The position numbers and the translations under genes were made by a program. From NCBI RefSeq assembly GCF_963853765.1, contig NC_088859.1, positions 46,438,001-46,502,000 on the forward strand: a stretch of DNA of 64,000 nt, read 5' to 3'. Source of the DNA: Magallana gigas. Lineage: Eukaryota. This document shows positions 53,232 through 56,200 of this stretch, in pieces. How positions within the stretch are numbered: the first letter of the stretch is position 1; each line of letters starts with the position of its first letter. Under the pieces are notes generated by a model, which saw only the letters and a program-made list of their open reading frames with translations, made no database searches and was not told the origin of the DNA.

Positions 53232-56200
53232 ATGCTACACGAGGTTGAACTGAACAGCTTGGACGTGTCTAACTTGATGTGGGACATCCAGAAGACATGT
53301 GTAACAAATGAGGATATAGAGTATCTGTGGGAAATCAAGCAGGTCTGGCTGGTCAGGAACAAGGAGCTCACAGAGAGATATGAACGGAAGCGGAAGTTGA
53401 TGAAATCTTTGGTATGAAAAACAGAGATTACATCAATGGTAAAATAAGACTCCGTATGCTGTCAGCAGACGTTAATATGGCGCTGATATTTTGTAGGGAA
53501 GGACTGAGGAAGAGACTAAAGATGACCTACTGTTCATGGCTGAGGGATTCAACAATGTCCAGCGAATCTGCGAAATTGGTCCACGCTGTAAGGAAAAGAA
53601 AAACAATGTGCTGGGAGATACACAATATGGGATTCATATGAACAGACATTATGATATTTTGACCAGATTTATGGTGTTTAAAAACTTCCAGCAGGCCAAT
53701 TACCTCGTCATATTAAGGGTAAAAACTCAACTTAGCACTTTATTTATTTTTGTTTAATTTAAGAAGGTAACACTTTTGATATTTTCAATTTGATGCATTT
53801 TATATAGGGTATGCTCGGCCGAGTGAAGAAAGTGAAGCCATTTTTTACCGGGGAATATGGTTGTATAGCTCCCACTCCAAACTACGACTGTCATCTAGCG
53901 GAGAACGCGCCTGATTTAACCAGTATTGACATAAGCGATGCCATTGCGTACAATTTTGTAAGTAAATAATCATACATTTACAACAGGTTGAATAAAACAA
54001 CACTGAAAATTTCAACTCATTTTATTGCTATCTTTTTTAGGCGTACATGTACGAATATGATGAAGAAACAATTATACCAATGAATTATCCAAGCCACGTA
54101 CTACCAATCGCAGTTTTACGGTTGCATCGAACAAGGAACAGGCTAGATCGAACAGTATTGTTAAACTACACAAGAGAGAGAGACCTTGCACTTAGTAAAA
54201 ATATACAGCGGCTCAAAAACGAAACTAAGCCCTTAAAACATCTACCAAGGTCAGCGCCTCATAAAAAATATGTAGTGGAGGGAAGGCGGTCTGGAACAAG
54301 GCTGATATCGGATGTACCAATAGAACCGCCATCTGAAAAACCTCCTGGGGAGACCACCAAAAAACTGGAAAAGTTTCGTAGACCCTCCGCTCTGTCGGGG
54401 GGGACTGGCATGGGGTATATGTTTTTCAGACGACCTTTTAATAAAATGCCTACAACGTGGCAGAGAATGTTTGGTTTCCATTCCAAAAGGAAAGGAAAGA
54501 GTTCACATTCTCCCAAGAAACGTGTTAGAGATCGATCAAGGTCAAGGTCACAAAACAGGGAGCCTGAAAAACGCAAGCGATCGAGGACCAGGAGTCCGAA
54601 ATCGTCATCGTCAAAATCCCGGGAGAAGAATTTGTTTGAATTATTTGATAATTCTAAACAAAATCAAACAAGTGATAGCTCATCTGATGATGAAAAATCG
54701 AATAATGGAGTAACAAAACAAACAACAAAATGTGTTGTTGTCGACAAAAAACCTTCAATTAGCAGTATTGATACAGGATGTAAGAAAACTGTGGATCAGA
54801 AAAGCTCAGGAAATCACACACCAACACAAGATGAACGTCAATGTAATGATGTAAATATCGATGTGTCATCAATAAAGGAACATGGAAGGAACACAGGATC
54901 AGACCCTTATGTCAGACATGACTCACAACTTTCAAGAACGTGTTTAGATCAAAAGCGTCAGACCATTCAAGATCATGGTAGCACGAAGTCACGGGAATTG
55001 TCAAACAGCGTCACCCCAGAGAGAAAGCCGTCTGATCATGGCTCGCCCCATGTAGACACGGTAAAGGTAGCTTCTTCAGAGACAAGAAAAAGGAGTGCTT
55101 CATCAAAAGACAATGAAACTGACCTCACTTATAAGCTTGTTAGAATTACACTTGACGAGCCAGATGCGCCTAGTATTTATCATGAATTAAGGGGTATTAG
55201 AATTCCATCGGGTGAGAAAAAGACTGTGAAAGATCCAAGAATACTACGTGCAATGGGTCATGTCATAGAAACACCCGTCATGGCTGGGTTTGGTCCATTT
55301 TTACGTCGTATAAAAGAGGAGCCTCCTGAAGATGAGTCTTATGGAGAAAAATCAGAGAAAAGGACAAAGAACATTCTTCCAGTTGAATTCATCAAAATGG
55401 AACCAGAGAACGAACAGACAGAAGATGATGTTGAAAAAGCATTAAACGAGCTTAATAATGCTATAAAAGCCATTCAAAATAATTCGTCTGTAGACACGGA
55501 TGTTGTCAAAATAAAGAAGGAGCCTGGGGAGACAGAGAATTGTACAGATGGAAAAACTCGTGCTGAAGCACAATCAGGAAAACAAACTGATAAAGAAAGA
55601 GATAGAGAACGAGAGAGCAATACGGATGATTTTCTTCCAAGGAACATGGGATTTTCTTCATATCTACCTGAATATAACGATGATTTTGAACGAACAGCCC
55701 GTGTATTAACAGAAGTATTTAGCGAGAAGGCAGCATCGCCTACTAAAAAGGTACATATGAGCATGTCTGATTACTTTGGTAGCAGTAATCCAAATGTTTA
55801 CCTTAATTCAACGAACAAAGGTAACATAGAAAGGAAGTTGTCTGATATCAACTCTAGTTGTGAACCAACTAGATCTGTGCAAGTTCCCAAGGAAAACGCA
55901 GAAAAGAAGGAAAATAACAGTGGTAAAGCAAAGGAGCTCATAAAAACAAAGTCGTCTGCCAAAATTCTAGAGTCCAACAAAAAAGAAAAACACAACGAAA
56001 AGATATCTACAACATCTACAACATACTCGAAAACAGTTAAACAGAAAAAGTATGATTCAAAACATAGTATTGCATCTGAAAAACAAAAAACGAAAAAACC
56101 AGAATTCGACAGCAACGAAAAATTAGATGTACAACGAAACAAATCGAGATCACTCAAAACGAGAAGTAGATCTCGTTCACCTGCATCTCAGCCGCGCAAA

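Follow-up and report, generated by a model that had tools for sequence, protein, structure and literature searches.

The closest described counterparts of the gene presented here are TASOR of the HUSH complex and TEX15 of the PIWI-interacting RNA (piRNA) pathway, both of which carry a DUF3715 pseudo-PARP domain. TASOR requires this domain and the version from TEX15 can substitute for it, the two being functionally interchangeable (PMC10578480); within the TASOR domain, Douse et al. identified an extended loop between the last two strands, together with Tyr305, as critical for function and peculiar to TASOR (PMC7532188). Beyond these two proteins, the family tree of Schöpp et al. 2023 (PMC10578480) includes DUF3715 proteins that lack SPOC-DomI, and DUF3715-only 'truncated Tex15' proteins have been reported from 21 cnidarians (preprint, bioRxiv 10.64898/2026.09.07.749791). 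Here, we describe a further member of the family from the oyster Magallana gigas, encoded in a stretch of 64,000 nucleotides (NCBI RefSeq assembly GCF_963853765.1, contig NC_088859.1, positions 46,438,001 to 46,502,000 of the forward strand; hereafter the window): an expressed gene for a 1333-residue protein in which a dead pseudo-PARP domain is followed by a disordered tail rich in arginine/serine (RS) dipeptides. That gene, its domain, its tail and its membership of a bivalve-specific branch of the family are near certain. On balance we also favour the fuller statement that this protein acts in the nucleus as an adaptor for co-transcriptional, RNA-directed repression or surveillance.

A preliminary description of the locus had proposed an undescribed branch of the transposon-silencing machinery. 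This was too strong, as Schöpp et al. had already included DUF3715 proteins lacking SPOC-DomI and the bivalve orthologues already bear the name 'TASOR pseudo-PARP domain-containing protein' in UniProt. Like the DUF3715-only proteins reported from other invertebrates, the oyster protein has a DUF3715 domain and no other recognisable one; unlike them, its clade is confined to bivalves and two further DUF3715 paralogues occur beside it, and the published reports describe no molluscs, tail features or DPR motif. What is new is the bivalve-restricted clade alongside two other paralogues, a gene structure verified by transcripts, conserved modules within the tail and an Asp-Pro-Arg (DPR) motif that recurs across the family.

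Gene structure and the pseudo-PARP domain

The gene lies on the + strand of the window, where four coding exons in phase 0 with GT-AG borders (53232-53411, 53497-53718, 53808-53957 and 54041-57490, stop codon included) join into a frame of 1333 amino acids (aa) without internal stop. The whole polyadenylated mRNA comprises five exons and extends from ~52114 to 57663. Exon 1 (52114-52607) is 5' untranslated region (UTR), defined by RNA contigs X1 and X14 and by the joint 52607>53230, which has GT..AG ends and is supported by 7 raw reads as well as by contigs from three runs. Exon 2 (53230-53411, start codon at 53232) encodes residues 1-60 and with them the domain's N-terminal strand and helices; exon 3 (53497-53718) encodes residues 61-134, and exon 4 (53808-53957) residues 135-184, a part of the domain that includes 'PTPNYDCH'. 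Exon 5 (54041-57663) carries residues 185-1333, the stop codon at 57488-57490 and ~170 nt of 3' UTR, with AATAAA at 57645-57650 and transcript 3' ends in RNA contigs at 57586-57663. All four exon joints are seen in RNA contigs from three runs and in poly(A) raw reads; the raw reads share a single orientation, which in most stranded libraries corresponds to RNA of the + strand. A transcript-derived database protein of 1333 aa (P0001), which belongs to a cluster of 806 identical or near-identical sequences, is identical to the window protein over residues 1-523 and differs at 11 positions further on. The preliminary description had singled out positions 53232-54140, which do lie within a real, expressed gene; they do not form one open frame, however, and span four exons. 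A stop codon stands 12 codons upstream of the annotated start in the upstream frame and both transcript ends are defined, and there is therefore no room for further coding exons. A pseudogene or an artefact of annotation was rejected as a reading of the locus.

The 5' part of the transcript offers some minor observations. An in-frame ATG at 52601-52603, at the end of the 5' UTR exon, could prepend Met-Asn-Arg to the protein, although database models begin at the second ATG, at 53232, and the 494-nt leader carries several short upstream open reading frames. Poly(A) reads cover intron 1 (window 52596-53192) at a depth of 2-5, with variants at 52699, 52731 and 52733, and an RNA contig of 204 nt lies within the same intron at 52914-53117. 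These signals may come from transcripts that retain the intron, from an alternative 5' exon or from another transcript that overlaps here.

Residues 1-215 are a DUF3715/RDTS pseudo-PARP domain of the TASOR/TEX15 type, as the motif-by-motif resemblance noticed in the preliminary description had indicated. Firstly, the Pfam profile PF12509 matches the full protein at 58.4 bits (E 1e-15; gathering cut-off 28.5) over residues 57-206 and profile positions 2-150 of 150; exons 3 and 4 taken singly give sub-threshold matches (21.6 and 17.9 bits) that are collinear on the profile, and orthologues score 51-86 bits. Secondly, a phmmer search of all PDB sequences returned a sole match, TASOR 6TL1, with residues 35-211 aligned (E 3.5e-17). 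Thirdly, an AlphaFold2 model built with 49 family sequences has a predicted local distance difference test score (pLDDT) mostly above 90 across residues 1-215 and, in the Foldseek comparison that the preliminary description had suggested, falls closest to 6tl1_A (E 3.2e-18, template modelling (TM) score 0.86, root-mean-square deviation 2.7 Å); the top three matches amongst Swiss-Prot models are likewise TASOR orthologues, with the reservation that the structure libraries hold no TEX15, such that TASOR as best structural match partly reflects library content.

The active site is degenerate, as had been read from the sequence at the outset. In profile alignments 'LLFMAE' of exon 3 lies opposite 'LFHGT' of PARP14, placing Met74 where the NAD-binding His of PARPs would be, and 'GIHM' of the same exon lies opposite 'GIYF' of ZAP and the PARPs, placing His107 at the Tyr of the triad. 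Loss of the H-Y-E triad is judged from these His and Tyr positions, the third residue not being placeable with confidence from sequence alignments. Because both residues are replaced, the domain is catalytically dead. Degeneracy of the triad is shared with TASOR, as are the domain family and fold, whilst a His at the Tyr position is not. Also shared is the end of the domain (residues 185-215, window 54041-54133), where alignment to 6TL1 makes Tyr190, within 'YEY', the counterpart of the essential Tyr305, and where the model has an extended loop of ~15 residues between the last two strands (184-188 and 204-214); Y188 and E189 are conserved in at least 90% of the 49 family sequences. In TASOR the domain begins at about residue 110, whereas the oyster domain begins at residue 1.

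Position within the DUF3715 family

An exhaustive profile search returned 267 representatives at E<=0.001. The closest relatives are all bivalve proteins of 1300-3100 aa with DUF3715 as their only domain, from Pinctada, Tegillarca, Pecten, Mytilus, Sinanodonta, Mactra and Mercenaria. Trees were built with FastTree on 142 domains and with IQ-TREE on 71, with labels checked by names and Pfam content; the trees are unrooted and have no outgroup. Both methods recover the window-gene clade as monophyletic with 100% support, every named member being a bivalve. A clan of TASOR, TASOR2 and the SPOC-bearing proteins of invertebrates stands apart at 98 in the Shimodaira-Hasegawa-like approximate likelihood ratio test, vertebrate TEX15 forms a clade with 97% support, and the window-gene clade falls outside both, which bears out the suggestion that the protein is distinct from TASOR, TASOR2 and vertebrate TEX15. 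Uniting the clade with the TASOR-like genes of molluscs lowers the log-likelihood (lnL) by 40.7 units (approximately unbiased (AU) test, p 0.034). A union with TEX15 raises the lnL by 2.9 over the free quick tree (AU p 0.62), and a union with a mollusc-wide paralogue also scores slightly above that tree (AU p 0.67), neither being rejected; in the free quick tree itself the clade adjoins the TASOR-like clan with support of only 69%. These three alternative deep groupings lie within 5 lnL of each other.

Two other DUF3715 loci exist in the same genome. The first, on contig C4 at 17.95 Mb (C4:17945000-17954999, + strand), has DUF3715 exons followed by exons that tblastn shows to be homologous to the SPOC domain of a scallop protein (P0065). 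As its DUF3715 continues into this SPOC, the C4 gene is a TASOR-like gene separate from that of the window, which answers the suggestion that a separate TASOR be sought in this genome. The second, on contig C2 at 56.49 Mb (C2:56489324-56492539, - strand), belongs to a clade with members in both bivalves and gastropods, some of them as long as 3000-4000 aa (e.g. Argopecten P0021). On the simplest reading of these relationships, the window gene would be a non-SPOC paralogue that is specific to bivalves and evolves faster.

The domains that define the better-known relatives are missing from the oyster protein. Pfam finds no further domain in it, and no SPOC, PIN or TEX15 domain was found in the ~1100-aa remainder by Pfam, AlphaFold2 or hhalign, in agreement with the preliminary description; hhalign of the tail against the TEX15-domain profile gave a probability of 0.2%, i.e. 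no similarity. The alpha/beta (PF23314) and PIN (PF24630) profiles, absent from P0001, both detect their domains in fish TASOR and TASOR2 controls, and vertebrate positive controls for the TEX15 domain score 250-457 bits. The genome itself was searched exon by exon, which makes the following negatives weak evidence: no Periphilin/Lge1 (PF11488) was found; the TEX15 domain (PF15326), absent from P0001, was not found in the genome either; PIN_TASOR (PF24630) gave only sub-threshold matches, on other contigs; and SPOC (PF07744) matched only on C3, C4 (32.4 Mb) and C5 and not on the contig of the window, with the caveat that the SPOC of TASOR type at 17.95 Mb of C4 escaped PF07744 and was recovered by tblastn with the scallop protein. 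In contrast to TASOR, then, the oyster protein has no SPOC, DomI, DomII or PIN and hence no known platform for MPP8 and Periphilin, and it belongs to a different clan of the domain tree. It resembles TEX15 in being long and mostly disordered with its DUF3715 close to the N-terminus, and in lying on the same side of the split between TASOR-like and non-TASOR proteins; unlike TEX15, it has no TEX15 domain, is half as long, carries an RS-rich tail and stands outside the vertebrate TEX15 clade. The window protein is neither a TASOR orthologue nor TEX15.

Conserved elements of the disordered tail

The tail is basic, RS-rich and largely disordered, with conserved short motifs and helices. Its isoelectric point is 9.9, Ser makes up 14% and Arg plus Lys 20% of its residues, and its 47 RS/SR dipeptides cluster at residues 331-380 and 881-1000. 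AlphaFold2 covered residues 216-340, disordered save one helix, and residues 540-1333, with a mean pLDDT of 41.7 and isolated helices at 647-666, 1010-1057, 1110-1130 and 1141-1161. The preliminary description had presented a stand-alone DUF3715 followed by disorder, and the lack of any other domain agrees with this; the tail, however, is not featureless, as it holds invariant blocks and the DPR motif. The names of homologues point to an oyster of the family Ostreidae. Orthologues from Crassostrea virginica and Saccostrea are 51-55% identical to the window protein in the tail and ~81% in the domain, and several stretches vary little or not at all across oyster genera: residues 237-330, 548-663, 715-790 and 1108-1161, and the C-terminus.

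Along the window these elements succeed one another on the + strand. The conserved post-domain block (residues 237-330; 54197-54478), predicted to be disordered save short helices and with many positions invariant amongst oysters, is followed by a first RS/KR-rich stretch picked out by the composition scan (residues 331-380; 54479-54628). The most conserved block of the tail by invariant columns (residues 548-663; 55130-55477) contains the DPR motif, the SUMO-type sites IKEE and IKME and a confident helix at 647-666 (pLDDT ~87); the tail as a whole has three [VILMF]KxE sites that are followed by Pro. Further on lie the main RS domain (residues 881-1000; 56129-56488), defined by sequence windows with at least 50% Arg plus Ser, a long predicted helix with pLDDT 78-89 and partly invariant amongst oysters (residues 1010-1057; 56516-56659), and a conserved helix-linker-helix (residues 1108-1161; 56810-56971) that is also kept in the Pinctada, Pecten and Mytilus orthologues. 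The C-terminus (residues 1268-1333; 57290-57487) is rich in Arg, Gly, Ser and Tyr. A DUF3715 protein of the echinoderm Asterias rubens (P0109) is annotated 'serine/arginine repetitive matrix protein 2-like', and RS-rich tails may therefore recur in non-TASOR DUF3715 proteins outside molluscs.

Within the most conserved block, 'VKDPR[IL]LR' places the DPR triplet at residues 582-584 ('VKDPRILR' in the window protein; 55232-55240), in a region of low pLDDT. The triplet is invariant in 7 oyster sequences and is also present in orthologues from Pinctada, Pecten, Sinanodonta and Mactra; with oyster genera counted separately, 6 of 11 orthologues in the window clade carry a DPR-type motif, that of Pecten being looser ('RDPRA'). 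All three DUF3715 genes of the genome have it, the C4 gene twice in a downstream open frame of 389 aa and the C2 gene as 'TRQDPRIR' some 80 residues past the domain. Elsewhere in the family, 10 of the 12 vertebrate TEX15 proteins sampled carry 'IKDPRL.KR' ~170 residues past the domain, all six sampled TASOR proteins have a DPR-type motif downstream of theirs, in a disordered region, and motifs of this kind are also found in most invertebrate TASOR-like proteins, in amphioxus proteins and in the mollusc-wide clade. Amongst the 111 family proteins that are 1000 aa or longer, 58 contain [KR]DPR[ILVMF], a count inflated by shared descent, where shuffles predict 1.2; six control patterns, made by permutation or by altering a single residue, turn up in 3-15 proteins each. 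The spread of the motif over all major clades except TASOR2 is independent of that inflation.

DPR has been experimentally defined as a WDR82-binding motif in SET1A, ZC3H4 and Symplekin of S. pombe (PMC9911701, PMC13710762), and its occurrence in TASOR has been noted (PMC13710762). WDR82 is the top interactor of HUSH and is needed for the association of TASOR with chromatin (PMC10915761). By this comparison K-DPR-[IL]-LR is a candidate WDR82-docking motif. As in the known WDR82 partners (SET1A/B, ZC3H4, S. pombe Symplekin and PCF11), a conserved Asp-Pro-Arg lies in a disordered or loop region; in contrast to them, no WPL/I or LI-like companion motifs were identified in the oyster protein. Within the library of papers searched, none linked TEX15 to WDR82 mechanistically, and such a link seems to be unpublished.

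A proposed adaptor and its alternatives

The DPR motif, the RS- and Arg/Tyr-rich regions and the interchangeability of DUF3715 domains together suggest how a nuclear adaptor for co-transcriptional, RNA-directed repression or surveillance could work. K-DPR-[IL]-LR would dock the oyster protein on WDR82, and hence on RNA polymerase II and the termination machinery; the disordered regions rich in RS and in Arg, Tyr and Gly would hold nascent RNA and self-associate, as does the N-terminal region of Periphilin in HUSH, which binds RNA and associates with itself (PMC7544229); and the pseudo-PARP domain would deliver the undefined effector step that TASOR and TEX15 require for silencing. A single polypeptide could thereby unite roles that HUSH divides between TASOR and Periphilin. 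The analogy with Periphilin-1 and with proteins related to the serine/arginine-rich (SR) splicing factors lies in disordered sequence rich in Ser, Arg and Tyr, of the RNA-binding and self-associating kind; the resemblance is compositional only, a Lge1-type C-terminal helical domain was not detected and homology is not claimed. Taken by itself, this mechanism has about an even chance of being right, or less, and it is the domain, and nothing else in the protein, that points to the silencing of transposons.

It is worth noting, however, that several points weigh against the adaptor. It is drawn from sequence, a structural model and analogy, and the molecular role of DUF3715 itself is undefined according to a 2025 review. 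An RS-rich tail is a typical trait of splicing and RNA-processing factors unconnected with silencing, and the bivalve clade has His at position 107 where TASOR and TEX15 keep Tyr. DPR amounts to three residues, its count across the family is swollen by common ancestry, and it is missing from the sampled Mytilus and Mercenaria orthologues. The weak evidence of the exon-by-exon search also gives the genome no Periphilin-type Lge1 domain.

The main alternative, a minority view that deserves to be taken seriously, holds that this is an SR-related protein of splicing, export or 3'-end formation, in which the pseudo-PARP is a mere RNA- or protein-binding module as in ZAP and takes no part in the silencing of transposons or chromatin. 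The RS domains and basic tail would suit it, as would an Atlas feature search of the tail, whose nearest neighbours are SRRM2-, SON-, NKAP- and SCAF11-like proteins, a lead only, with scores below 0.9 that reflect composition. The SRRM2-like annotation of the echinoderm protein points the same way, as do the weak binding of single-stranded RNA by the TASOR domain and the precedent of ZAP as a pseudo-PARP RNA sensor (PMC7532188), and the 806-member cluster suggests presence in many data sets. Against this, all characterised DUF3715 proteins act in RNA-directed silencing, and Pfam detects no RRM or other RNA-processing domain in the protein.

Rather improbable, though with some evidence in its favour, is a bivalve functional counterpart of vertebrate TEX15, i.e. 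a germline nuclear factor of the piRNA pathway and a 'truncated TEX15'. A clade of the window group with TEX15 that the AU test does not reject, a 'KDPR[IL]' followed by a further Arg downstream of the domain in both, the annotation of the Mactra orthologue as 'Testis expressed sequence 15' and the classing of cnidarian DUF3715-only genes as truncated Tex15 all speak for it. No TEX15 domain was found in the protein or, exon by exon, in the genome, however, the window clade lies outside that of vertebrate TEX15, and grouping with the mollusc-wide paralogue is at least as good on an unrooted tree. Very improbable, and already contradicted, is an oyster core subunit of HUSH, a TASOR whose SPOC, DomI and PIN were missed in other exons: its best PDB and Swiss-Prot matches are TASOR, but the mRNA ends set by RNA contigs, stop codon and AATAAA, the lack of SPOC, PIN and alpha/beta domains in the protein, the lack of SPOC and PIN_TASOR matches on the contig of the window in the exon-by-exon search, the separate DUF3715-SPOC gene on C4 and the well-separated TASOR clan all oppose it, and a truncated TASOR gene model was rejected. 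An active mono-ADP-ribosyltransferase has equally little chance: despite the PARP fold and weak PF00644 matches (E ~0.03) in three orthologues, it was rejected on the substituted His and Tyr and on the want of a PF00644 match at E<=1 in P0001, and the better match to an active enzyme for which the preliminary description had allowed is not seen, active PARPs and ZAP reaching ~4e-9 and worse in Foldseek, nine orders of magnitude behind 6TL1.

The favoured adaptor could belong to a wider scheme, which we put forward tentatively and consider unlikely to hold in full: that DUF3715 with a downstream [KR]DPR[ILM] is an ancient two-part module, through which every DUF3715 protein, the three mollusc paralogues as well as TASOR and TEX15, docks onto WDR82 and the termination machinery of RNA polymerase II. 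If true, it would give TEX15, a factor of the piRNA pathway, an entry point in common with HUSH, make the bivalve protein a minimal, single-polypeptide silencer (a pseudo-PARP, a WDR82 dock and an RNA-binding, self-associating disordered region), and reveal which parts of HUSH-like silencing are indispensable. The bivalve family offers a natural, stripped-down context in which to study DUF3715, comprising the domain, a candidate WDR82 dock and disordered, putatively RNA-binding sequence with no HUSH assembly domains, and a TASOR-like gene is available for comparison in the same genome. The family-wide DPR motif provides a concrete and cheap hypothesis that is applicable to mammalian TEX15, and for oyster biology the gene becomes a candidate regulator of transposons or of aberrant transcripts.

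Elsewhere in the window, a run of 150 N at 33283-33432 marks an assembly gap or a masked stretch.

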